Positions 14,063-47,148 of a DNA stretch of 64,000 nt are shown here, one piece after another. The notes beneath the pieces are model-generated. The model saw only the letters and a program-made list of their open reading frames with translations, had not been told where the DNA came from and did not search any database. A program made the translations under genes and the position numbers. This stretch comes from Mobula hypostoma (lineage: Eukaryota), in assembly GCF_963921235.1 (NCBI RefSeq), contig NC_086101.1, positions 191,022,001 to 191,086,000 of the forward strand, read 5' to 3'. Numbering within the stretch: the first letter of the stretch is position 1; each line of letters starts with the position of its first letter.

Positions 14063-14585
14063 AATTGAAGAGTAGTACAACAAAGAAAATATTTCATATT
14101 TCATAAACTTTTAAATTTAGACAATATCGACATTCAAAAGGCTGATAGTTTATTAACAATGTGATACAGACTTCCATTCTGTGTTTATTGTTACAATTTG
14201 TAACAGTATTGTAACTTGAAACACTGACAATGTAAATATGTTTCAAAGTAAAGGTTGTGGTACATTTATTATTTAGAAAATTTATGGATTATATTTACTA
14301 ACAAAATTAATTACACATTTATATTAACATAGATTTCAAAATTATATTAACATTAACATCATGAAAAAGAAAAATTCAGCAGTGTGGCAACAAAGGCTAC
14401 ACATACGAGAGCACCTAAGTCACGGTGCAGCCACACACCCATGCAGCTTGGAGGGAACAGCAGACCCCATACAACAAATGATTGCTGCTCAGATCAGCAT
14501 AAGCACTCAGTTGCAGAGAAGTTGGGGCAGGAGAAGTTCCTGTGTGTGAAGGGAGAAAAATGGGTTCTCGGTCTCCAACAGTGGA

Positions 14586-14601
14586 TTAGTCTGGATCATC
14601 T
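14586..14601 (-). CDS. Siglec-15-like receptor, exon 5 (cytoplasmic tail and stop)
   Basis: Acceptor TTTTATCCACAG|A GAT GAT CCA GAC TAA. Phase 2 matches the TM exon end (AG|), giving R-D-D-P-D-stop. Unique UTR-like sequence follows. Confidence 0.55.
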
Positions 14602-20063: not shown

Positions 20064-21200
20064 ATGGAGATTGAGGAATTTCTAAAGGCGCCAACCTTGG
20101 AGGCATTAGAGGATGCCAGGAAAGTAGAATTGGCAGCTGTGGCCAAACGGTTGAATCTTTTTAAGGGGAAGTCGACCATGAGGAGAGAAGAGATGCACAG
20201 AGCTATCATAGAACATTATGTGTCTAAAGGTGTGTTTCCCCAAGGGGAGCTGGAGGTGATATCTATTGAAAAACCTGGTGGAGACGCAGTACAGGTGCAG
20301 CTTGAAAAATTGAGACTCGAGCATGAGTTCTGGGTAAGACAGCTAGAACACGAAGAGAAACAGTTAGAACAACAACGAGAAGAGAGGCAGTTGGAGCGAG
20401 AAGAGAAACAGAGGGAAAGGGAATTTGAGCTGGAGAGGTTAAAGATAAGGGCCGAGCAGGGGCTCGTGCCGAACCAAGGTGGAGGGTTCAGGGTGACCCA
20501 GGAGGTTAGGCTGGTTCCCCCATTTGACGAGACCGATGTTGATCGGTACTTTCTCCATTTTGAAAAAGTTGCTGCAAGTCAGGACTGGCCAAGGGATAAG
20601 TGGGCTGTTTTGCTTCAGAGTGTACTTAAAGGAAAAGTCCAACAAGCTTACTCGGCTTTGTCCGCAGAAGATGCCCAGAAGTATGAGGTGGTGAAAGAGG
20701 CCATACTCAGGATTTATGAGTTGGTCCCGGAGGCAAACCGGCAGAGGTTCTGGAATGCGAGGAAGCAGTGGGACCGCACGTATTTAGAGTTTGCCCATGA
20801 GATGCAGATATATTGTGAGCGTTGGTGCGCCTCGAAGGGGGTAAATGGGGATTATGACAGACTGCTACAGCTGATCCTGATTGAGCAGTTTAAAGGTTGT
20901 GTCCCTGAAGGTATGAGACCCTACCTCGATGAGAAAGAGGCAGACACTTTAGCCGCAACTGCTAAGTTAGCGGATGAATACGCGTTGACACATAAAACGA
21001 AGTTTACCCGGAGTAAAGGCTACCAGAAGGGTAGTCAAGACGGCGGGGAGAGTCCGCCAGAAAAGTCATAAAGTAAGCTGGGGACTAGTGAGAAGGATAA
21101 GGTAGACCGGGAGCAGTTTGGTAGGAAGTCTCCTGGGGTTGTATGCTATAATTGTGGGAAAGTCGGACACTTTGCGTCCAGGTGCTTTGCCCCAAAGAAG
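20064..21200 (+). pseudogene. gag: Gypsy gag (coiled coil, SCAN-like domain, CCHC knuckle) with premature stop
   Basis: 335-aa ORF (FEKVAASQDWPRDKWAVLLQSVLKGK...YEVVKEAILRIYELVPEA.RQRF). After the TAA at about 21069 the frame continues to CYNCGKVGHFASRC. Confidence 0.85.
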
Positions 21201-21339
21201 GAGACAGGAAAAGGGAAAACAGCGGTTCTGACTGGCTGTATTGAGCTGGTAAGCAAACCGCTAGGAGAGAAGAGGTCTGATAAAGTTCAGGAAGGGCGCG
21301 AGAGGTTTATCTCGGCCGGATTGGTGTCGGTGAAGGAGG

Positions 21340-23010
21340 GGTTAAACCCAGTTCCAGGACGGATCTGGAGCTTGTCAGTCATTGATATTAAAGAGTGTGT
21401 TAGACTTTAGTTCAGAGACCCAAACTGGGAAAGTCAGGGTCATAAAAGGCGTTGGGAAAGGGACTGAGGCAGTACCTTTGCACCAGATACACCTAAAAAG
21501 TGACTTGGTCTCCGGACCGGTCACGATCGGGGTGAGGCCCGAACTACCGATGAAAGATGTGGAGGTCTTACTCGGTAATGACCTCGCCGGCGGAAATGTA
21601 GTAAAACTGACAAGCTAGCCTGCCAGCATTGAGGCCTCGCCCATGGACTCACAGGTTTATCCCATTTGCGCAGTGACTCAACGTGTGTCCAGAAAGGCTG
21701 CCGAAGTAATTGTAGAATTGGCTGAGACGTTTCTACCAGCCTTGTACCAGGGGGAGGTAGAAAGTGAAAAGAAGGAGCATAGTAGAACAGGAGGAAGTGT
21801 GGGAGCTGAGGCAGACTTAACATTAGCCACGAAGGAATTTGTACAGGCACAGGAGCGAGACGAGGAGCTGATGGTTTCGGCGGACACAGCTCTCTCTGAC
21901 GCAGAATTAAAAAGGGAGCCAGTAGGCTATTGTGTGGAGGAGGGAGTGCTAAGGAAGAAATGGAGACCAAGTACCGTGTCCACAGATGAGGAATGGGGGG
22001 TGGTGCCAAAAATTTATGGGGATGAGATTCTTAACCTGGCCCACAAGATACCCCTCGGTGGACATTTTGGGGGGAGGAAAACAGTCGGCGGAATCATGAA
22101 AGAGTTTTACTGGCTGCACAGGAGGAAGGATGATATTGACTATTGTAGACGTGAGTTAACACAGTTAGAGGCTATTAACATGTTAAAAGCTCACCATGAT
22201 CAGAAAACAGATCTAGCTGGTGATATCATGAAAATTAATGAGGCTAGGGTGCCACCTGATAAAGGGAGGACCCATTTTGAAAAGATAAGTGTGGTGCTGA
22301 CCAGATGGGAGAACTCTATTGTGTTGACCAACTTTGCTGATGAGTTCTCTCACTTAATCCCTAAACAAAGCGACCCGTTACAAGAGCTAATTAAACGGCA
22401 CGCACACATATGTCCGAATGTCCCGAAGTGATGCAAAGAGCTGGGACATGGTGTTGCTGTCACATCAGGTCAGCCTAGTGAGCAACATCCCTATAGAATG
22501 ATTAATTCAGTGACAAAAGGGCTAAAGAACACAGAAGTGTAGATTGGGGATGTAGTGGTCTGGAGTGACACGTGGGAGGAGCACATTGTGGCAGTAGAGG
22601 AGTTGTTTAAACGGCTGTCCGAAGCCAACCAGACAGTGAACCTCGCAAAAAGTGAATTCGGCCACGCAAAAATCACTTATCTGGGATTTGTGGTAAGACA
22701 GGGGCAGCTGGCACCGATGCAAGTTAAGGTGAAGACTATCTCTGACGTCCCAACCCCGACAGACAAGAGAGCCCTGAGAAGGTTCTTGGAGATGGTGGGG
22801 TACTATAGGAAGTTTTGCAAGAACTTTGCGGATATTACCCACCCTCTTACTAAGCTCTTGCCAAAGAATGCTATATTGGTATGGGACGACCCTTGTTATC
22901 TTGGTCTGGGACGAAAACCACTGAGAAGTTACACTCATCACAACTCATTAGTGTTTTTGGCCACTATGAAGTTTGCTAAGTTGGAGCCTGGTCTTAGAGG
23001 ATTATCAAAA
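21340..23010 (+). pseudogene. pol: Gypsy pol remnants: protease, integrase zinc finger, RT palm/thumb
   Basis: VEVLLGNDLAGG (protease C-terminus; DTG motif frameshifted), ILNLAHKIPLGGHFGGRKT...FYW (integrase H2C2), then *IGDVVVWSDTWEEH...VNLAKSEFG...YLGFVV...LRRFLEMVGYYRKF (RT with YIDD destroyed). Integrase core and RNase H are missing. Confidence 0.8.
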
Positions 23011-23185
23011 TAACACATATAAAAGGAACGGCAAATGTGATTGCTAACTGTCTGTCAAGGTGTTGTCAACTTAAAATTCTCTGCATTAGCCAAATAGCTG
23101 ATGAACATGTATATTTGTGTGTATCTAATAGTGTATTCATGCCTATAATTTTTACCCCAGTAAAAATCCTTGAAGGATAGAGGTA

Positions 23186-25997: not shown

Positions 25998-26097
25998 CTG
26001 GGTTTGATCTTGTATAAAATGATGCCCATCACTAACAAGGTGAAAATTTTCATTCCGAGTGGGATACACAACAGCACAACGGGGGACATCTGCTTGA
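25998..26097 (-). CDS. Siglec-15-like receptor, exon 4 (transmembrane segment with central Lys)
   Basis: Acceptor CTTTCTCTTCAG and donor AG|GTATGT, phase 1 to 2. Encodes (V)KQMSPVVLLCIPLGMKIFTLLVMGIILYKIKP. Confidence 0.85.
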
Positions 26098-28008: not shown

Positions 28009-28383
28009 CAGCTCTCATCCGCAGGTGGGCCTCATACAGGGACAGATGGATGATCAAGGACGAAGTATATCCATGGTCAGTCCTGGTCTTCAACTCAGCC
28101 AGACACAGGTAGCTGTGACTGTCCTCCACACTCAGCTGCTTTATCCTGGTCGAGGCGTCCCCCAGCTCTGGGTCCCCGATGAGCTCGTACCGAGTCACCC
28201 CGTTTTCCGCTGCCCACGATCCATTTGTTTGGCGCCTGAAGGTGACGATGTGTCGGTAAGGAGTCTTCCTCATCCACGTCACCGTGAGTGAGATAAAGCT
28301 CTGCGGAGGCCGTGTGAACTCACAGGGTAACGTGGCCGAAGCTCCCTCGGTTCCAGTCACCTCCAGATCTTTCCCATCAGAAG
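28009..28383 (-). CDS. Siglec-15-like receptor, exon 3 (second V-set Ig domain)
   Basis: Acceptor GTCCTCCTCTCAG, donor G|GTGAGA, 375 nt, phase 1-1. Motifs ATLPCEF...VTW...RYELIGDPELGDAS.RI..L..EDSHSYLC match V-set B, C, D, E and F strands. Confidence 0.92.
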
Positions 28384-28780
28384 CTGAGAGGAGGACAGAC
28401 ACCAGACAGTATTGATTCACGAATGGCTCCAAGCAAAGAGTGAGGAGAAAAGAGGGAGCTTTCTTAGACAAACTTGGAAATGTGAACCGATGCCTTGTAT
28501 CACACTGAATAAGTTTTAGACACAACACTGGACATCCCAGTAGGAAGGGTAGAGAGAACAGAGGCCCAATGCCCACAGAGATCTAGCCATGTGGTGAAGA
28601 TCTCCCTCCAGGGATTGGAGCCCATACTCTTGGTGGTGGGGTCTGAGGTCTCACACAGGTGTTGAAGGTCAGCGAAGATGTGGTTGGTCAGTAACTCAAT
28701 CATCTACATCCCAGAAGATCCCTGTCGCAGTTGGTGCCCAACGCACACACATGTTACCCCCATACATAATACATGCCCCC

Positions 28781-28782
<2 letters not shown>

Positions 28783-28810
<28 letters not shown>
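28783..28810 (+). repeat. (CA)n microsatellite
   Basis: About 14 perfect CA units. Confidence 0.95.
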
Positions 28811-28813
<3 letters not shown>

Positions 28814-28984
28814 TCTTCGGTTGGTCAGTTGTCCATCGAAATCCGATGACGATGTCCACTCCTTTAACGGTGAGATCTTTGATGACTATACAGTCCTATC
28901 CTGGACCCACAAGCTCTATTGCAGGTGGGACATGTATATGTGGTAGTGGTGGCAACCATGGCTGCATTTCTCCTGGCTCTCTTC

Positions 28985-31790
28985 TGCTGTCTTCTGGTTG
29001 TTCTTTCCATCTCCAGAATACGAACCCAGTCCCTTCACAGCTGTCGCCAAGTGGTACGGTCAGCAGCAACGTCCTCCAGGTCCTCGGGTCTGATCTTGCA
29101 CTTTCTTAAAGCAGTCTTCATCTGATCCTTACAGCGCTTCTTCGGCCCTCCAGCTGAGCATCGACCATGATGTAGCTGGCCGTATAACACTCTGCGGGGT
29201 AGCTGACATGGGGGCATCCTTATCACGTGCCCAAGCCACTGCAGCTGACACTGGGTGATCATGGCCTCAATACTCCTGCAGTTGGTCTTTACAAGTATTT
29301 CAGTGTGAGGTACCCGCTCATGCCAGGTAATTCCGAGGATGCGCTGGAGGCAGCTTATGTGGAAGTGCTCCAAGGACTTGATGTGACGGCGGTAGGTTAC
29401 CCAAGCTTCACAGCTATAAAGGAGGGTGGTGACACAGACCGCTTGGTATACGGCGACCTTTGAGGAGGGACGAAGGCTCCTGTTCTGAAAGACCCTACGC
29501 CAAAGTCTCCCAAAGGCAGCTGATGCCTGCTTAATGCAGCTCTGGATGCCGTTGTCAATGCTGCTATCCTCAGACAGAATGCTCCCCAGATATTTGAAAA
29601 ATGGCACTACTGACAGCTTTTCATCACCAACAGTGAAGGCAGGTAGAGTGGGTGGGACACTGGTACTCCATTGGCAAACCACTTCTGTCTTGGTGGTATT
29701 GACAGTGAGCCCCATCCTGCTGTACGCTCTCACCGCCACGGCAAGGACAGTCTGAAGATCCTCCGGAGTATGGGCCACAGAGCACAGTTGTCTGCATACT
29801 GCAGCTCCAGGACCCGCTCTCTACGGAGTTTGGTGGCTGTGTGGAGCCTCCTGATGACAAAGAGGTTGCCATCTAATCTGACGTCCACTGCCACCCTGCT
29901 GCTGTCTTCAATCTCATTGTGGAGAAGCTTGGTAACACACAAGAGGAAGATGTTAAGGAGCACAGGCACTGGTACACACCCCTGCCTCACCCCTGTGCGT
30001 ACAAGGAAGGGCTCGGACTCTTGTCCTCCTGTGGTCACCCGAGCAGTCATCCCATCATGGAACTGGTGGAGGAAGTTAACAAATTTATTGGGACAGCCAA
30101 ACCTGAGGAGGACATCCCATAAGAGCTCTCTTTGCACAGTGTTGAATGCTTTGGAGAGGTTGACAAAGGCCATAAGCAGGTCCTGATGTTGCTCCTGGCA
30201 CTTTTCCTGAAGCTGCTGGGCTGTAAAGATCATGTCGATCGTGCTCCTGTTCTTCCTAAATCCACACTGTGATTCAGGCAGCATTGACTCGGTGATTTTG
30301 CTAATCAGTCTCTGAAGCATCACCTTAGCCAGGACCTTTCCAGCAACAGAAAGCAGTGATATGCCCCTACTATTGCCGCAGATGGCCTTGTCACCCTTGT
30401 TCTTATAAATGACAACAATGTTTGAATTTCTCCATTGCTGTGGGATGTTCTCATCAGCCCAGGCCTTGGTGATGTACTGGTAGAGGGTGCGCATACACGT
30501 GTACCCTCCGTTCTTCAGTAACTCAGCAGGGATATTGTCAGTGCCAGGGGACTTGTTGTTCTTAAGGGAATGGACAACTGATAGAACCTCCTGGAAGGCT
30601 GGTGGTAAACTGAGGTAATGAATAGGAGGAAGTTCAGGCAGTTCGTCCAGGATGGTGGGGTCTGCGTCAGAGTCCTGATTAAGCAGGGTGTTAAAATGCT
30701 CAGCCCACCTCAGCAGAATGGTATTCTGATTCTTCAGAAGTGTTAGACCATCTGCTATTTTCAGGGGAGTAACAAATCAATTTATTCGGCCGTAGATGGT
30801 TTTGACAGCATTGTAAAAATTATGCATGCCATTATTATCAGCAAATGACTGGATTTCATGTGCCTTTTCAGTCCACCACTCATTTTGTATGGCCCGTATT
30901 GCCTTTTGCACTTTCCTCCGAGCTGCCTGCCGATGCTACCTGATGCTGGTGGATGACGGGTCGTCTAGTTGCCCGGTGTGCTTTGCATGTCCTTAAGCAA
31001 GTTGTGGATGGTGTCTGAGTTATCATCAAACCAGTCTTGGTGGTTCCTGCTGTTATGGCCGATGGATTGGGCTGCTGACACATGGAGCGCAGAGCTGATA
31101 TAGGTCCACTGTTGTTCCATGGTATTTTCTGAGCTCAGATAAGGTTCCAGCTCTCTTAGTTTCTCAGCTAGGATGTGTTGAAACTCACTTCTTGCTTCTG
31201 TGTTTCTCAGGCAGTTGCAATTTGGCTGCTTTTTATTGGGTTTTTGCAGCCGCAAGGGGGGACACACTTTCATATGGAGCTTGGCCACAATCATACAGTG
31301 GTCAGTCCAGCAGCCTGCACCTCTCATGGCACGGGTGATGAGAACATCCTTGATGTCACTACGTCTCACAATGAAGTCGATCATGTGCCAATGTTTAGAG
31401 TGAGGGTCCATCCACGAGGTCTTATATTCTGCCTTCTGCTGGAAGATGGTGTTGGTTATGGTAAGGTTATGCTCAGAGCAAAGAGTAAGCAGTCTCATGC
31501 CATCTGCATTCACCTTGCCAATACCATGCCTACCGAGCACTCCACTCCATATCCTGTTGAAGTTCCCAAGCAAAAGGATCTTATCATTCTTAGGGATCCG
31601 GCAAAGAGCTTCATCCAATGTTGATTAAAGCATTTCTTGGCCTCATTCTCAGAAGGCAAAGTTGGTGCATAGGCACTGAGAAGCATGGCATGGCGTTTCT
31701 TTGCCAGGGGGATACGGAGGGTCATTAATCTTTCAGTAATGCCAACAGGTGTTTCTGTGAGACTTGGTAGAGAGGTGTTCGTGATGGCCA
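28985..31790 (-). mobile_element. RTE-clade LINE (APE endonuclease + RT), frameshifted
   Basis: Minus ORFs SAYAPTLPS...DKILLLGNFN...WMDPHSKHWHMIDF, then GNSRGISLLSVAGKVLAK...ESQCGFRKNRSTIDMIF...GVRQGC...LQYADNCAL, then FKYLGSILS...QLQWLGHVIRM. Confidence 0.9.
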
Positions 31791-31821
31791 ATATGACTGC
31801 CACATACACAGAACCACCACC

Positions 31822-31823
<2 letters not shown>

Positions 31824-31861
<38 letters not shown>
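31824..31861 (+). repeat. (CA)n microsatellite
   Basis: About 19 perfect CA units. Confidence 0.95.
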
Positions 31862-31862
<1 letters not shown>

Positions 31863-34335
31863 TCCTCCCACACGTGTATGTACCCACAAACAAACACAAA
31901 CCCACACATCGCTCCTTCTTGTACCTTTACCACACTTCAGACTTCCACACACTTCTGGCTGATCTCACCGCACGCATGTCTCACCGAGGCACTTCCCACT
32001 CAAATGTACTCGTGAGCCAGTGACAGCCTTCGGATGTGGTAGTGACAGTGACGGTGGTGGTGGTGGGAGACACTGTCCAGTGGTGGGAGACCCTTTGGAT
32101 GTGACAATGACAGTGATGGTGCTGGGAGACATTGTCCGATGACCGCACAAGTAAGACCAGTCCACCCACTACCATCAACAGCTGGTTGATACAGTTGGCT
32201 TTGGGCCGCAACCTCTCACATTGCCTGGGTGCCTTTCTTCGTTCCGGTGTCCCGGGACACCCAGCCATTCAGGGAGCCGCTATTTAGCAGGAGGACGGGT
32301 CTATGAAGGCAGCTGTCACTTGAGAAGGTGTGGTCAGCCACCAGCTCAGATACTGGCACTCCTCAACCCAAGTCAGCCCAGGGGACATCTCCTCAGCAGG
32401 TGGCTGAGGGACTTGGTGTCCAAAAAGCATCTGCTGCACTCTGTTGGATTGGAGTGTAGAATTGTTATTTTTCTAGTAATTTGCTCTTCTGTGCTTGCTT
32501 CTAATTTTTATATAATCACCGTATGTAGACTTAATTGTTCAGTAAATTTTCTAGTGATTAGGGTATAGCTGATTCTGTACTTTCTCAGTTTTTCTCAGTC
32601 AGATATATGGGTTGGGGTCAGTAAGTTGTGGGCGTGCTATGTTGGTGCCAGAAGCATGGCGACACTTGTGGGATGCTCTCCAGAACATCTTTGGACTGTG
32701 TTGGTCGCTGACGTAAATGACACATTTCGCTGTATGTTTTGGCATGACAATTAAAGCTAATCTGATCTAACCTCCCATGCAGTCACCGGGGGATGTACAA
32801 AACTCCTTACAGACAGTGGTGGGAATTGAAGCAGGATGGCTGGCACTGTAAAGTGTTGTGCGAACTGCTACACAACCACAGCCCACCCCTACTTGCCTCT
32901 GAACTGTGGTGGCTGTTATGGGTGCACCACGCTGGCATGTCCGTTGTCACATGTAAGCCAAAGTTCAAACTTAACTTATCAAAGTATGTATACTTTATAT
33001 AACCTTGAGATTCGTCTCCTTGCAGGCAGCCACAAAACAAAGAAAACAAAAGAAGACCATCGAACACCCAATGTACAGTGAGAAGAAAAACAATAAAAGT
33101 AAGTAAATGGCATTCAGAACTGAAGTTCATGATTCAGAAGCCAGTTAGGTGCAGGCCACAGCCTCAGTTCAGTGCAAAGACCAGTAAACCTCGTGGAGCA
33201 GCGATCTAAACCAAATCGTCCCTCGCCCCTGGTCCTGATACCATGAGTTTTCAATCTGGCCCAGTGCTTCAATCATCCAAACCTGGGGTCATTCCTCACT
33301 CGCAGACTCAGGCCCTGCCGGACAAGGTAAGCAAGATAGACTTCCTTCCCAGACTATAGCAATGAAGTAGATTTGGTTTGACTAACTCTGCATTTCCACA
33401 ATTCATCCTAACTAGGATTAATTTTAGTTTCCATGACAATTTTATTTCAATGTTACATTTAAAACCCTGGAATGATATGGACTCACGTTCCCTTGATTGA
33501 TGACACAACCTCATGGTTTCAGCCAATGCCCTTTCTTTTAGTGGCCTGGCCAACACCAACACATCCCTTCTGGAAGCTGCTGATCCGATGCTGTTTAATT
33601 AATAAATATATTTATTTATTGAGAGATACAGCAGCATGGAACAGGCCCTTCCGGCACTTTGAGCTGCAACCCACCTATTTAACCCCAGCCTAATCACAGG
33701 ACAATTTACAATATCCCGCTAACTGGTACGTCTTTGGACTGTGGGAGGAAACCAGAGCACCCGGAGGAAGCCCATGCCCTCACGGGGAGAACGTACAAAC
33801 TCCTTACAGACAGCACTGGAATAAACTCCGAGCTCCAACATCCCGAGCTGTAAGGGCATTCCACTAACTGCCACGCTGTCTGCTTGGGATGCTGCACAAG
33901 TCAGTTTTTCATTGCTCTTCTGTGTAACTTCAACTTTGAACAAGCGGTGGCTTACTTAACTGTGGGAGTATGTCAGATAGCCCCTGTTTGCGGGAACGCA
34001 ACTTCCAGCGGGTTTCGCTACAGAGGGGTTAGTTCTGTAGGCCAGACATACAGGTTCGTGCTGGACTTCTTCTGCTGTCTATGTGGAATCTGTACGTACT
34101 TCTTGTGATGGCGGGTGCCTCGGTTTCCTTCCACACTCCAAAGACGTGCAGGTGGGCAGATTAGCAGGTTGTGGGCAAGCTATGTGAGTGCTGAAAGCAT
34201 GCGAGTTGCCTCCACAGACTCCTCGGACCGTATTGGTTGCTGATGCAAATGTGAAATCTTGCTGCCTGTTTCCATGTACGTGGGACAAACGAAGCTAAGT
34301 TTGGGCACCACGGTAGGGTAGTGGTCTGTGTAATT

Positions 34336-34770
34336 ATAGTCATAGTCATAGTCATACTTCATTGATCCCGAGGGAAATTTAGTTTCATTACAGTTGCACC
34401 AACCAAAAGTAGAGTATAAATATAGCAATATAAAACCATAAATAATTAAATAATTATATGTAAATTATGCCAAATGGAAATAAGTCCAGGACCAGCCTAT
34501 TGGCTCAGGGTGTCCTACCCACCAAGGGAGGAGTTGTAAAGTTTGATGGCCACAGGCAGGAATGACTTCCTATGACGCTCAGTGTTGCATCTCAGTGGAA
34601 TGAGTCTCTGGCTGAATGTACTCCTGTGCCCAACCAGTATATTATATAGTGGATGGGAGACATTGTCCAAGATGGCATGCAACTTAGACAGCATCCTCTT
34701 TTCAGACACCACCGTCAGAGAGTCCAGTTCCATCCCCACAACATCAGTGGCCTTACGAATGAGTTTGTTG
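34336..34770 (-). mobile_element. Rex1 LINE (young family), short 3' copy
   Basis: NKLIRKATDVVGMELDSL...SFLPVAIKLYNSSLGG and a (CTATGA)n tail. Confidence 0.9.
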
Positions 34771-34779
34771 AGTTTGTGA

Positions 34780-35090
34780 TGTGGGCACATGGCCAAGTGG
34801 TTAAGGCATTGGACTAGCGACCTGAAGGTCGTGAGTTCGAGCCCCAGCCGTGTTGTGTCCTTGAGCAAGGCACTTAATCACACATTGCTCTGCAACGACA
34901 CCGGTGCCAAGCTGTATGGGTCCTAATGCCCTTCCCTTGGACAACATTGGTGTCGTGGAGAGGGGAGACTTGCAGCATGGGCAACTGCTGATCTTCCATA
35001 CAACCTTACCCAGGCCTGCGCCCTGGAGAGTGAAGACTTTCCAGGTGCAGATCCATGGTCTCGCAAGACTAACGGATGCCTTTACTTTAC
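34780..35090 (+). mobile_element. tRNA-derived SINE (same family as 18173-18486)
   Basis: A box, B box, central domain and (TTTAC)n tail are nearly identical to the first copy. Confidence 0.9.
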
Positions 35091-35436
35091 TAGATACCCT
35101 AACAGCTCGAGGTGTCAGAGTTCAGAGCTCAGTTCCAGCGTCCCCTGTCAGAAAGTTTGCACGTTCTCTCTGTGAGTGAGCAGGTTTCCTCCCTCACTGC
35201 AATGACATGCTGCTTACAGGCTCATTGGTCATCGTAATTACAGACCACTACAGAGGGGTTACCCTTGTAGGTCCACATGTATGCTAGTTGGTCATCCTGT
35301 GATTAGGCTGGGGTTAAATCAGGGAGCTGCTGAGTGGGCAGCTCATTGGGCTGGAAAGACCAGTTCTACATTGTCCCTCTAAATAAATAAGAACAAAAAA
35401 TAAGCTTTAGTTTTAAACCTGAACGTTGCTCCTTAC

Positions 35437-35790
35437 CTCTGACCATCAGTTGTGTTACAATCATCCCACTGATGTCTGGAATGTTACACTGATACCAACC
35501 ACCGTCACTCCGCTTCAGACGCTGCACCATGATCGAGGCGTCCCCCTGGCTGAGGTCCCCCACGAATATGATCCGGCCGCCTTCTGCCTCCTGAATCATG
35601 TTGCTGCACTGGGAGTGGAAGGGACTGGGGTACGTACACTTGGCCACGGCATTGTAACCCCGCAGGTCGCCTTTTAACCATGTCACGGTGTAGGGGAGAG
35701 TGAGGTCGATGACAGTACACGGCAACACTGCAGAGCTTCCTTCCACTGCAAACACATCGTCGGCATAGGGAATGGTCCAAACAGTGGAGG
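35437..35790 (-). CDS. Siglec-15-like receptor, exon 2 (N-terminal V-set Ig domain)
   Basis: Acceptor TTCTCCCCTCTCTCAG, donor G|GTAAGG, 354 nt, phase 1-1. Encodes STVWTIPYADDVFAVEGSSAVLPCTV...VTWLK...AKCTYPSPFHSQCSN...RIIFVGDLSQGDASIMVQRLKRSDGGWYQC...TQLMVR. Confidence 0.92.
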
Positions 35791-36649
35791 CTGAGAGAGG
35801 GGAGAACGACGGGTTTTAATTGCTATGCTTAAATTTAGAGATGCATCGTGAACCAGGCCCTTCGTTGCCCAGCAACCCACCAATTTAACCCTGGCCTAAA
35901 CACAGGGCAATTTGGAATGACCAATTCACCTATTAACTGTGGGGTGTGGGAAGAAACTGGAGCACCCGGAGGAAACCCACGCACACACGGGAAGAGCGTA
36001 CAAACTCCTCACAGCCGCCACTGGCACTGACCTCTGAACTCCGACGCCCTGAGCTGTGATAACGTTGCATTAGCTGCCGCGTTACCGTGGCGCCCCCACT
36101 CCCCCCCCAATTCTCGCAAGCGGATGGCCAGTGGTGGCAGCTCAGTCGTGTGGTGAACAGAGACACTGCATCACAGCTCCAGTCACCCAGGTCCAATCCT
36201 GGATTCCAGCGCTGTCTGCATGCTCTCCCCGCCTCCAGTCTCCAGTTTCCTCGCTACGACCCTGGGATGCGGCGGGGCCAATGGCAAACCACCTGTGTGG
36301 AAAAATTTGCCAAGATCAATCATGGTCAAAGTCCGCGATCGCCCACATCATAGGACATGCCGTAATGATGATGATAACAGAGTGCACATTGACTAAGAAA
36401 CCCATCATCAGGCCTTCTGTCCGTGTTGGGGTTTATCAATTTTGCAGGAGGGGTCAGACTTCAAGCACTTTGCATGTCAGGTGCTACAAATAAAGAACTA
36501 CAGACAAGGGCAAGACCTTTGAATACAAGTCCTTGCCAGGTGGCAAACACCTGACTTACGCATAGCCTATACAGAGAAGCAAGCCGTGCCCTGGGAAAAG
36601 CATACAGTGAACATACACACTATCTATGCCCCTAATGATTTCATACACC

Positions 36650-41792: not shown

Positions 41793-42112
41793 CGAGGGGT
41801 GATTGATAAGTTCGTGTCCTAAGGTAGAAGGAGTCCATTTTAGAAAACCTAGCACATTTGTTTTCAACATAGTCCCCTCCTGCATTCACACACTTAGTCC
41901 AGCGCTCGTGGAGCATACGGATCTTGGACCTCCTGAAAGTGTCCACAGCAGGGATGATTGATAAGTTTGTGGCCTAAGGTAGAAGGAAATAAGATATTAA
42001 CTTCAAACTTTCTGCATAATCACTCAAAGAGTTGAACTGCATGTGCACGTAACGAGAGCTGTATAACTCATCGCCTTCTACCTTAGGCCACGAACTTATC
42101 AATCACCCCTTG
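41793..42112. mobile_element. Mariner-derived MITE (320 bp)
   Basis: TIRs CGAGGGGTGATTGATAAGTTCGTG.CCTAAGGTAGAAGG and its reverse complement, TA target at the right end, and an internal minus-strand transposase C-terminus (IRMLHERWTKCVNAGGDYVE). Confidence 0.85.
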
Positions 42113-42114
42113 TA

Positions 42115-43380
42115 TTTATGGGCTCTCAAGTGGCTTATGAGTCCAATCTTGGCTTTGAAAGTTCTTCCGCATTCAGGACAGGTGGCTCCAGATGGCAGAT
42201 CGGACTTTGGTTGTTGCTGCTTCTCTCTCCATTTTCTTCTCTTTTCTTCTAATTCTGCACATCTGTTGGCTTCGAAAGTTGCTGTTCCTCCTCCGATGAT
42301 GCCTTGCCAGAGTTTCCTGTCCTTGGCACTGGTTTCCCAATTGTTGATGTTGATGTTACATTTCTTCATGTTGGATTTTAAGACGTCTTTGAATCTCTTC
42401 TGTTGTCCGCCTCTTTTACGTTTGCCTTCTTTAAGCTGGGAGTAGAAGATTTGTTTCAGCAGATGTTCGTTTTTCATCTGAACGTTTTTGATCGCTCCAT
42501 CTTAGTTGGTTTTTGATGATGTAGGCTTCAACGCTTGTTGTTTTTGCTTTATTTAGCATGCTGACATTGGTTCTTCTATCCTCCCAGCTGATACTGAAGA
42601 TGTTTCGAAGACAATGTTGATGGAACTTTTCAAGTGCCTTCAGATGTCATCGGTATGTTGTCCAGGTTTCTGATGCATACAGGAGAGTTGGGATCACCAC
42701 TGCTTTGTACATTAACATTTTGGTGTCTGTTCAGATGGCACGATCATGAAAGACTCTTGTTTGGAGACATCCAAAAGCTGTTCCAGCGCATTGTTGGATC
42801 TCATTGTTAACATCAGGTAGGAGATACAGAAGCCTGAAGGCACAGTCTCAGCGATTCAGGAACAGCTTCTTCCCCTCTGCCATCTGATTCCTAAATGGAC
42901 ATTGAACCTTGGAAGACGATGTTGGGTCTCGTCATTAAGGTCGACATTGGAGGAGAGGTGACTTCCAAGATACGGAAAGTGGTCCACGTTTTCCAGGGTT
43001 GTTTCGCCAAGTTGAATTGATGGTTCTATCCGATTTGTCTCAGTTGGTGACGGTTGATAGATGATCTGAGTCTTCTTGGAATTGATGGTAAGTCCAAGTT
43101 TCGTGTATGCACGGTTCAAGGCAGTCAGAATCTGTTGTAGGTGGTTTTCTGAAAGAGCTGCAACACTGTTGTCATCTGCGTATTGGAACTCGATGAGGGA
43201 ACTCGTGGATGTCTTGTTTCTGGATTTGAGACGGGCAAGATTGAAAAGTCTGCCATCTGTTCTGTAGACAATTCCGATTCCTGGGAGTAGGTCATCCCTG
43301 ATTACGTGGATGATTGTCACAATGAAGATGGTGAACAAAGTTGGGGCAAAACAAAGTTGCTTTCTTTGGCTGTATATATG
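42115..43380 (-). mobile_element. RTE-clade LINE 3' portion
   Basis: DGRLFNLARLKS...FQYADD..VAALSE...HFPYLGSHLS; KQIFYSQLKEGKRKRGGQQKRFKD...CPECGRTFKAKIGLISHLRAH. A Rex1/Babar piece lies at about 42805-42910. Confidence 0.85.
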
Positions 43381-43831
43381 TGTGCGGTTGAATGACAATA
43401 AACTTCAGCTTGAACAATGACTATTGTGTAGTTAGTGACACACAAAGGCTGGCAAATGACAATGTACGAAGACAATGTGTACAAATATAGAAGTTATATA
43501 TTGATAAATAATACTAAGAACATGAGTTGTAGAGTCCTTAAATGTGATTTCACTGGTTATGGAATTAATTCAGGGTTGAGGTGAGCGAAGTTAACCACAC
43601 TGGGTCAAGAGCCTAATGGTTGAGGGATAATAACTGTTCCTGAACCTGGAGGAGTGGGACCTAAGGCTCCTGTACCTCTTTCCCTTATTAGCCTCAAATC
43701 CTGAGCCTCTTGTACCTCTGCAACTAGATCCTTGACTTTGTCATCGGGAGACCACTGTCAGTGCAGGTCAAAGATAACATCTCCACCTCCCTGACAATAA
43801 ACACAAATGAACCTCAAAGATGCCTGCTGGG

Positions 43832-47087: not shown

Positions 47088-47148
47088 TGTCACTGAGTAC
47101 AGAGCCCAACAGCAGGGCAGCAGGCAGCCAGGAACCCAGTAAGCTCAT
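47088..47148 (-). CDS. Siglec-15-like receptor, exon 1 (signal peptide)
   Basis: GAG ATG start, then MSLLGSWLPAALLLGSVLSD, then donor A|GTAAGT in phase 1, matching exon 2. Lies in a repeat-free island. Confidence 0.8.

Follow-up and report, generated by a model that had tools for sequence, protein, structure and literature searches.

An arginine-less, Siglec-15-like receptor gene of rays and its place in a shark-and-ray receptor family

Can a protein that is built like a Siglec, but lacks the F-strand arginine by which Siglecs hold sialic acid, still be a sialic acid lectin, and if not, what kind of receptor is it? The question is raised by a gene of the ray Mobula hypostoma, contained in the 64,000-nucleotide stretch of DNA analysed here (the window). 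The original prediction regarded this arginine as essential, and the role is documented for R143 of Siglec-15, which forms a salt bridge to the sialic acid carboxylate, and whose replacement in the R143A variant abolishes binding (PMC10264397; PMC7226832).

An intact, spliced and transcribed gene

The window contains a single five-exon gene on the minus strand (47148-14586), which is intact, spliced and transcribed. Its spliced coding sequence (906 nt) encodes a product identical to the RefSeq protein LOC134346383 of M. hypostoma (301 residues), all introns have GT-AG borders, and the protein is laid out as a signal peptide, two Ig domains (V1 and V2), a lysine-bearing transmembrane segment and an 11-residue tail (Table 1). 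A tblastn search of the window for further family exons or a C2 exon returned only four family-specific exons and one foreign signal-peptide exon, with no additional family Ig exon inside the 32.6-kb gene. Repeats in high copy flank the V1 exon.

Transcripts of the gene were found in all four RNA-like runs of M. hypostoma. The V1 exon is exactly covered (0 differences, 0 gaps) by contigs from two small RNA-like runs, which represent other samples of the same species, and these contigs extend past both exon borders into other sequence; for the V2 exon, coverage is 0.95-0.97 in four runs. The exact match of the independent contigs to the V1 exon, with AAC likewise at codon 123, shows that the asparagine does not stem from an assembly error and that the gene is spliced. 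Reads of organism B have TAC (Tyr) at this codon, as does M. birostris.

Table 1. Features of the LOC134346383 gene, in coordinates of the window.
Feature	Position	Strand	Remarks
Exon 1: start codon and signal peptide M-S-L-L-G-S-W-L-P-A-A-L-L-L-G-S-V-L-S-D	47088..47148	-	Exact peptide match to LOC134346383; GT donor, phase 1
Exon 2: V1, N-terminal V-set domain, Siglec-15-type four-cysteine scaffold	35437..35790	-	Pfam V-set E 1e-8; AG/GT borders
Cys122 codon TGT	35488-35486	-	V1 motif W-Y-Q-C-N-I-P
Asn123 codon AAC, column of Siglec-15 R143	35485-35483	-	V1; same letters in two other samples
Exon 3: V2, membrane-proximal V-set domain, long F-G hairpin	28009..28383	-	Pfam V-set E 1e-12
Cys232 codon	28105-28103	-	V2 motif S-Y-L-C-L-A-E-L
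Leu233 codon CTG, column of Siglec-15 R143	28102-28100	-	V2
Exon 4: stalk end and transmembrane segment C-I-P-L-G-M-K-I-F-T-L-L-V-M-G	25998..26097	-	Spliced coding sequence match
Lys280 codon AAA, exon 4	26050-26048	-	Transmembrane lysine
Exon 5: final four residues D-D-P-D and stop codon	14586..14601	-	Other frame used if exon 4 is skipped

The arginine column and the Siglec-15 scaffold

Both F-strand motifs are present where they had been placed, and two alignments assign the residue that follows the cysteine to the column of R143. In a MAFFT alignment of 75 domains, with mammalian Siglec-15 in human numbering as the reference, Asn123 and Leu233 share this column, and in a HMMER alignment of V2 with human Siglec-15 (PDB 7zoz, E 7e-10), Leu233 lies beneath R143 of the Y-F-C-R-V-E-F motif. 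The claim that both V domains lack the arginine is therefore correct, but as evidence it was overstated: V2 is membrane-proximal, and leucine occupies its R143 column in 32 of the 32 aligned V2 domains of the shark-and-ray family, so that only the absence from V1 is informative. The threonine in the D-A-S-T-R-I segment of V2, which had also been pointed out, is real, but it is no defect, being present in 26 of the 33 family V2 domains (Ile in the other 7).

In V1, the loss extends further. At the columns of the Siglec-15 contact residues (taken from PMC10264397), W44 is kept, while Y87 is replaced by Arg, R143 by Asn, E145 by Pro, Y154 by Ile and E155 by Val, and the F-G hairpin has 4 residues fewer than that of any orthologue. 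The Arg-bearing paralogues compared keep the W, R, V and E, with an aliphatic or aromatic residue (F or L) in the Y154 column and a variable residue (E, Q, R, G) in the E155 column. Since more than a lone substitution is involved, with the E145, Y154 and E155 equivalents lost and the hairpin shortened, the view that the protein is probably not a sialic acid lectin gains support.

The Siglec-like homology proposed for the protein is upheld at the level of the family, through the sequence match of V2, the four-cysteine scaffold and W44 equivalent of V1, the transmembrane motif, and the C-R-V-E-L motif of paralogues. Siglec-15 7zoz is the best PDB sequence match of V2 (rank 1). V1 fills all four cysteine columns of the C64-C142 and C95-C104 pattern (PMC10264397), and V2 the first pair only. 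In a PDB search with V1 alone, Siglec-15 is found at E 0.054, and an orthogroup-only V1 profile ties Siglec-15 with sodium-channel beta-2 (Nav beta-2) and JAML (~1e-11). The transmembrane segment carries a P-L-G-x-K motif (C-I-P-L-G-M-K-I-F in the window, P-L-G-I-K in bird Siglec-15 and L-G-L-K in mammal Siglec-15). The V-set domain is N-terminal as in Siglecs, and the second domain is V-set rather than C2-set by Pfam. An AlphaFold model of the ectodomain (pLDDT 84.4, pTM 0.82) predicts two complete Ig domains.

Lysine-bearing and ITIM-bearing members of a shark-and-ray family

The sequences document a two-V-domain Siglec-15-like family of sharks and rays; no description of this family was found in a search of the literature on Siglecs, Siglec-15 included, in sharks, skates and elasmobranchs, with partial coverage that leaves its absence from the literature unproven. 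A check of paralogues and orthologues for the arginine gave a divided picture: it is present in 21 of the 33 V1 domains, in the Siglec-15-like motif C-R-V-E-L, whereas the orthogroup of the window gene, present in all four ray orders, is Arg-less in V1 (N, Y, H or S). In a tree of 33 two-V proteins, the window gene forms a clade with those of M. birostris, Hypanus and Hemitrygon (support 100/100), which is enlarged by Pristis and Leucoraja (85/99). Forcing Narcine into the orthogroup is not rejected (AU p 0.49) and gives a slightly better lnL, and the signal peptides, which were left out of the tree, likewise group the orthogroup genes. The orthogroup is nested in a batoid clade, the other members of which mostly carry C-R-V-E-L. 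Its branches are long (0.5-1.5 substitutions per site), yet at least 7 species of the four orders retain an open reading frame, and all four V1 cysteines and 27 V1 columns are invariant. For V1, a rough dN/dS of about 0.56 was obtained between the two Mobula species; it is based on only 15 differences and lacks the precision needed to separate relaxed from diversifying selection, so that constraint on V1 is moderate at best.

Orthogroup members for which the transmembrane exon was recovered all have a lysine-type transmembrane segment and a short tail. Elsewhere in the family, tails of ~109 residues with ITIMs of the V-I-Y-A-E-V type occur besides transmembrane-lysine members with tails of ~10 residues. 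The suggestion of a paired receptor fits this combination of ITIM-tailed and lysine-bearing members within one family, with the orthogroup always on the lysine side. No ITIM tail was found among the recovered orthogroup members, nor a near-identical inhibitory partner for the orthogroup, the nearest non-orthologous V1 domains, including those of other M. hypostoma paralogues, being 41-47% identical to that of the window. For Siglec-15, the transmembrane lysine is reported to bind DAP10/DAP12 (PMC7226832).

Candidate function, alternatives and known systems

The reading that we favour as reasonably probable, judging from sequence, is that the window gene encodes an activating receptor that couples to an adaptor, belongs to a paired Siglec-15-like family and no longer binds sialic acid in the canonical manner. 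In this reading, the protein would be a cell-surface immune receptor with type I topology, from an elasmobranch family that goes back to Siglec-15. Its V1 domain would have given up canonical sialic acid binding and would bind a different ligand, which might be a protein or another kind of glycan, of host or microbial origin. Engagement of this ligand would allow the transmembrane lysine to pair with a DAP12-type ITAM adaptor and to transmit an activating signal, as in Siglec-15, so that the receptor would form the activating side of a family of paired activating and inhibitory receptors, and would itself be blind to sialic acid. V2, being highly conserved across paralogues, would more likely serve as a stalk or cis-interaction module than as a lectin domain. 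A more tentative proposal, which we hold to be possible but somewhat doubtful, is that a branch of this Siglec-15-derived paired family quit sialic acid for good before the ray orders split, rebuilt the F-G face of its lectin domain as a new binding site and retained a DAP12-type activating transmembrane segment all along, thereby becoming a sialic-acid-independent activating sensor. The ray orders diverged more than 200 million years ago.

It is unlikely that the protein is still a sialic acid lectin, working through a non-canonical basic residue (for example the Y87-column Arg on the C' side) or another face of V1. W44 is kept, and the Y87 sialic acid contact column holds Arg (D-L-R-G-Y) in 5 of the 7 orthologues (Mobula hypostoma, Hypanus, Hemitrygon, Pristis and Leucoraja), a residue that might substitute in the V1 pocket; but the column holds Trp in M. 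birostris and Gln in Narcine, the sugar-holding F-G residues of Siglec-15 have given way to others and their hairpin is shortened, and in Siglec-15 the R143A change by itself abolishes binding (PMC10264397; PMC7226832). We consider it quite unlikely that the main product is a secreted decoy, in which skipping of the transmembrane exon would join V2 to the last exon in its other frame, giving a soluble V1-V2 protein. When exon 4 is skipped, the window does encode a tail of 31 residues that is the same as the C-terminal end of isoform X2 annotated for M. birostris, and a similar tail is annotated in Pristis; the M. hypostoma RefSeq model is nonetheless the membrane form, with which a soluble form is compatible.

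That the gene is instead a family member in decay or without function, left to drift once its ligand site was lost, appears very unlikely. The long branches of the orthogroup, the V1 dN/dS, the 4-residue deletion specific to M. hypostoma and the variability of the Arg-column residue among orthologues would all agree with drift, but they are set against the frame kept intact across four orders, the invariant V1 columns, correct splicing with transcripts in every RNA-like run of the species, and a confidently predicted structure. More improbable still is that the protein is not usefully related to Siglecs, and is a generic two-V adhesion or co-stimulatory molecule of the JAML, CAR or pIgR kind. 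Here the resemblances come mainly from fold comparison: Foldseek against the PDB gives JAML, pIgR and CD226 as the best whole-model matches, in VIA-align, nectins, antibody V domains and CAR score equally well at Z 13-14, and JAML is the best single-sequence PDB match of V1. In both fold searches only generic V-set or two-V proteins (antibody Fv included) were returned and 7zoz was not prominent; such searches cannot separate Siglec-15-like from other V domains, and the matches are partial or reflect only the V-set fold or the V-V layout. By contrast, V2 has Siglec-15 as its best match, the transmembrane motif is of Siglec-15 type, and F-T-H-P, the extra disulfide and C-R-V-E-L are found in tetrapod Siglec-15 as well as in the paralogues with 41-47% identity in V1.

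Among known systems, Siglec-15 (human Q6ZMC9; 7zoz) shares with the window protein the V-set B-F disulfide and extra C'-C'' disulfide, the W44 equivalent, and a P-L-G-x-K transmembrane motif with an adaptor-binding lysine and no accompanying ITIM. It differs in having a C2-set rather than V-set second domain, a tail of about 50 rather than 11 residues, and the R143 that is Asn in V1 and Leu in V2, together with the Y87, E145, Y154 and E155 that V1 has not kept. JAML (PDB 3mj6) has the same tandem V-V ectodomain and is the best Foldseek match to the whole model (E 4e-16, TM 0.42), but its sequence match is limited to the E-F region, and neither a transmembrane motif nor a cysteine pattern is held in common; the resemblance is one of layout, not lineage. 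In the paired Siglecs (Siglec-5/14 and Siglec-11/16), related ectodomains are mounted on ITIM tails or on DAP12-recruiting charged transmembrane segments (PMC6288428). The ray family likewise combines related ectodomains with ITIM tails or a charged transmembrane residue, although the window orthogroup differs in that no inhibitory counterpart came to light whose ectodomain is nearly identical to its own.

Loss of the essential arginine is recurrent in primate Siglec evolution, and is usually interpreted as a way of escaping pathogens that imitate the host's own sialic acids. The arginine, and sialic acid recognition with it, has been lost from human Siglec-XII (R122C), great-ape Siglec-5 and chimpanzee Siglec-14, which are still expressed (PMC6288428). 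Arg-less Siglecs are thus well known in primates, and the ray gene, likewise an expressed Siglec-family receptor without the arginine, is a Siglec-15-like case of a known phenomenon. In primates, the losses are single substitutions of recent date among CD33-related Siglecs, and because they are young, new function is hard to tell from decay. In the ray gene, which belongs to a Siglec-15-like lineage, the loss is common to all four ray orders, appears to predate their divergence, and is accompanied by a rebuilt F-G face; an Arg-less relative of Siglec-15 is there intact, expressed and putatively adaptor-competent, alongside paralogues that keep the arginine. It is a natural example of a receptor that arose from a lectin and now probably recognises another target, and the family offers a natural matched set for questions of ligand, comprising Arg-bearing activating, Arg-bearing inhibitory and old Arg-less activating members. 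If the more tentative proposal of an early and lasting loss is true, the ray gene would represent a long-lived activating sensor, whose ligand might for instance be microbial or stress-related, in place of the transient ‘dead’ Siglec of the primate type.

A transcribed five-exon gene among retroelements

The composition and ORF content of the window are those of a retroelement-rich vertebrate genome, with two open V-set exons on the minus strand (28.0-28.4 kb and 35.4-35.8 kb). Queried with the V2 region, a word-indexed protein search yielded 49 proteins from sharks and rays; M. hypostoma LOC134346383 (P0004, 301 aa) was the top match, and exact peptide matching and re-splicing showed that this protein is encoded letter for letter by five window exons (CDS 906 nt) with AG/GT borders throughout. 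The 32,563 nt gene span equals the P0004 span on record in assembly GCA_963921235.1. By tblastn with five family proteins, the window contains no family exons beyond those of this gene, except for the signal-peptide exon of an adjacent paralogue, P0019 (LOC134346382), the remainder of which lies past the left end of the window; the family is thus tandemly arrayed in one orientation. Over the repeats that flank the V1 exon, summed contig depth ranges in all runs from hundreds up to hundreds of thousands, and loose ends are numerous.

Features of the two-V-domain gene and its surroundings
Feature	Coordinates	Strand	Remark
Exon 1	47148-47088	minus	signal peptide
Exon 2	35790-35437	minus	V1
Exon 3	28383-28009	minus	V2
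Exon 4	26097-25998	minus	transmembrane segment
Exon 5	14601-14586	minus	tail and stop
Asn123 codon	35485-35483	minus	AAC, directly after V1 F-strand Cys122
Leu233 codon	28102-28100	minus	CTG, directly after V2 Cys232
V1 F-G hairpin	35437-35460	minus	exon end
Exon-4-skipped tail	14507-14601	minus	follows exon 3
Adjacent signal-peptide exon	1461-1399	minus	95% match to P0019 residues 1-21
LINE-type reverse-transcriptase remnant	42106-43404	minus	intron 1, same orientation as gene; Pfam RVT_1 E 1e-8
LINE-type reverse-transcriptase remnant	29035-31618	minus	intron 2, same orientation as gene; Pfam RVT_1 E 1e-22
LTR-retroelement-like fragments	20064-23013	plus	intron 4; 335-aa ORF with SCAN (gag-like) domain, integrase zinc-binding domain and reverse-transcriptase tail
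V1 exon flanks	35295-35358, 35866-35998		high-copy repeats

Sixteen listed runs contain all or part of the V1 stretch; the four large DNA runs may be the assembly source. In four small runs, from other samples of the species, 0.57 of the V1-stretch words are present, near the exon share of the 601-nt query, together with 0.95-0.97 of the V2 exon. In alignments to 35200-36000, one contig in each of two small runs spans exactly the V1 exon, with no differences and no gaps, and runs on into letters absent from the V1 flanks, as a spliced cDNA would. The 'RNA?' label of the small runs is a guess, and they are read as transcripts because their contigs end exactly at exon borders. The gene is intact, spliced and transcribed, and the contigs, having no Arg, dispose of the assembly error considered in the original prediction. 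A second-species contig has 15 listed differences, its translation agreeing with the M. birostris orthologue P0005 at every changed residue, with TAC (Tyr) at the Asn codon.

Skipping of exon 4 would join exon 3 to the last exon in a different frame. The resulting tail of 31 residues (E-M-I-Q-T-N-P-L-L-E-T-E-N...) matches the C-terminus of annotated M. birostris isoform X2 exactly, and an annotated Pristis tail is similar. A conserved soluble isoform produced by transmembrane-exon skipping is likely.

The arginine position in V1 and V2

In Siglec-15, R143 on strand F forms a salt bridge with the sialic acid carboxylate, and R143A abolishes binding (PMC10264397); PMC7226832 describes the same role and reports that the transmembrane lysine binds DAP10/DAP12. 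The sugar is also contacted by Y87, W44 and Y154 and by backbone atoms of V150, R153 and E155; C64-C142 and C95-C104 are the disulfides (PMC10264397). In a HMMER search of V2 against all PDB sequences, human Siglec-15 (7zoz) ranked first (E 7e-10), with Y-L-C-L-A-E-L aligned under Y-F-C-R-V-E-F and Leu233 under R143. When 75 V domains were aligned with MAFFT, among them a mammalian Siglec-15 of human-matching numbering (R143, W44, Y87, Y154, C64, C95, C104, C142), both Asn123 and Leu233 fell in the R143 column. The residues originally read after the two cysteines, and the Siglec-15 motif given with them, with its essential Arg, are thus correct. V1 keeps W44 and both disulfides, and at Y87, E145, Y154 and E155 it has R, P, I and V, respectively. 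Its F-G hairpin is 4 residues shorter in M. hypostoma alone than in every orthologue, a difference confirmed by the gap-free cDNA-like contigs; the longer form occurs in M. birostris, Hypanus, Hemitrygon, Pristis and Leucoraja.

At the R143 column, 21 of the 33 aligned two-V proteins have R in V1 (the remaining twelve have N, H, S, Y, K, Q or G), and all 32 V2 domains counted have Leu. Because this Leu is fixed family-wide in the membrane-proximal domain, it is uninformative on the window gene in particular: arginine is absent from both domains, as originally read, but only the V1 loss is informative. Similarly, the Thr in V2 D-A-S-T-R-I is present but is the majority state (26 Thr, 7 Ile), and nothing special. 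The non-Arg V1 state requires at least six or seven changes on the maximum-likelihood tree, indicating recurrent arginine loss within the family.

The shark and ray family and the Arg-less orthogroup

Every ray genome sampled (Mobula, Hypanus, Hemitrygon, Pristis, Leucoraja, Amblyraja, Rhinoraja and Narcine) has several copies of the family, which also occurs in the sharks Pristiophorus, Heptranchias, Mustelus and Heterodontus, under inconsistent RefSeq names ('uncharacterized', 'Siglec-15', 'sialoadhesin-like', 'HAVCR1-like', 'pIgR-like'). Most members share the V1-V2 layout, and the V1 of most two-V members strongly resembles tetrapod Siglec-15 (G-W-S-M start, F-T-H-P past the B-strand cysteine, an extra cysteine pair, and strand-F Y-x-C-R-V-E-L-N). 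V2, with T-W-M-x-K and R-Y-E-L-x-G, is like the V domain found in V-C2 'Siglec-15' genes of sharks and rays, and the transmembrane C-I-P-L-G-L-K-T-L-A-L-L-V-M-G parallels P-L-G-I-K-V-L-I-L-L-V of bird Siglec-15 and L-G-L-K-V-L-L-L-V-G of mammal Siglec-15. Tails are of two kinds, one of ~10 residues with the transmembrane lysine, and one of ~109 residues without it, carrying V-I-Y-A-E-V and T-Y-A-S-I-L motifs. This division is characteristic of paired activating/inhibitory families and fits the earlier paired-receptor idea.

Arginine is likewise missing from the ray and chimaera V-(V)-C2 genes named 'Siglec-15' in RefSeq, with Leu and Cys in the two V domains of P0071 (M. hypostoma LOC134346377) and His in P0100 (Rhinoraja) and P0120 and P0183 (Callorhinchus); those of white shark and whale shark keep it. 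The Arg-bearing candidate sialic acid binders of M. hypostoma are thus the V1-V2 paralogues.

The window gene groups with its M. birostris, Hypanus and Hemitrygon orthologues with support 100/100, and these four with Pristis and Leucoraja with 85/99; including Narcine as well gives a slightly better likelihood (AU p 0.49). This deep grouping, with long branches in Pristis, Leucoraja and Narcine, is probable. It agrees with the signal peptides, which are outside the tree data (M-S-L-L-x-x-W-L-P-A-x-L-L-L versus paralogue M-R-S-L-R-V-C-L-C-T-V-L-L), and with a D-L-R-G-Y motif past the C strand, which lies within the aligned V1 and so is not tree-independent. The Arg column holds N in M. hypostoma, Pristis, Leucoraja and Rhinoraja, Y in M. 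birostris, H in Hypanus and Hemitrygon, and S in Narcine, and the following residues likewise differ from V-E-L-N. Every member with a transmembrane exon has the lysine and the short tail. Ray orders split >200 million years ago and, if this date is right, the Arg-less state would have been maintained for that long.

Proposed function and alternatives

The window receptor combines a Siglec-15-type scaffold and transmembrane lysine with the absence of the canonical arginine and neighbouring contacts. By analogy with Siglec-15, the canonical carboxylate salt bridge would not be possible, making sialic acid reading unlikely and supporting the original view that the protein is probably not a sialic-acid lectin. 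In the most likely mechanism, Lys280 would pair the receptor with a DAP12-type adaptor, and binding of V1 to some other ligand would activate the cell. The receptor would then be a sialic-acid-blind activating arm beside Arg-bearing inhibitory and activating family members.

One rival, judged unlikely, is a generic two-V adhesion molecule. AlphaFold, given 37 family sequences, models residues 19-266 with confidence (pLDDT 84.4, pTM 0.82) as two complete Ig domains, with the F-G hairpin short in V1 and long in V2. Structure searches with this model returned V-set folds and the tandem-V layout, nothing more specific. An orthogroup-only V1 profile matched Siglec-15 over the whole domain at E 1.6e-11, no better than sodium-channel beta-2, and by sequence V1 taken alone is far drifted; its Siglec-15 ancestry is argued from the scaffold, paralogues, V2 and transmembrane motif. 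A non-canonical sialic acid site is a further unlikely rival, as is a mainly secreted decoy produced by exon 4 skipping.

Slow decay of the gene is the remaining unlikely rival. In all comparisons made, conservation is lower in V1 than in V2 (for example 43-47% and 62-63% identity, respectively, to other M. hypostoma paralogues); alongside this, 27 positions of V1, all four cysteines among them, do not vary among the seven orthologues, and the gene is transcribed. Between M. hypostoma and M. birostris, V1 has 10 non-synonymous and 5 synonymous changes (dN/dS ~0.56), numbers too small to decide but compatible with an immune receptor domain that is under moderate constraint or in part diversifying. 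The higher conservation of V2 holds among both paralogues and species, with long invariant runs (T-V-T-W-M-R-K-D-P-Y-R-H-I-V-T-F-R; S-Y-L-C-L-A-E-F), suggesting that its role is conserved or that gene conversion has homogenised it.

Recurrent arginine loss is also reported in primate CD33-related Siglecs (PMC6288428), and Arg-less and paired Siglecs are established concepts. Some isolated losses within the ray and shark family keep the remaining motif (C-K-V-D-L-N, C-Q-V-E-L-N, C-G-V-E-L-N), whereas the window orthogroup does not. The window gene is set apart from the known cases by how old its arginine loss appears to be, by its rebuilt F-G face and by its V-V architecture.
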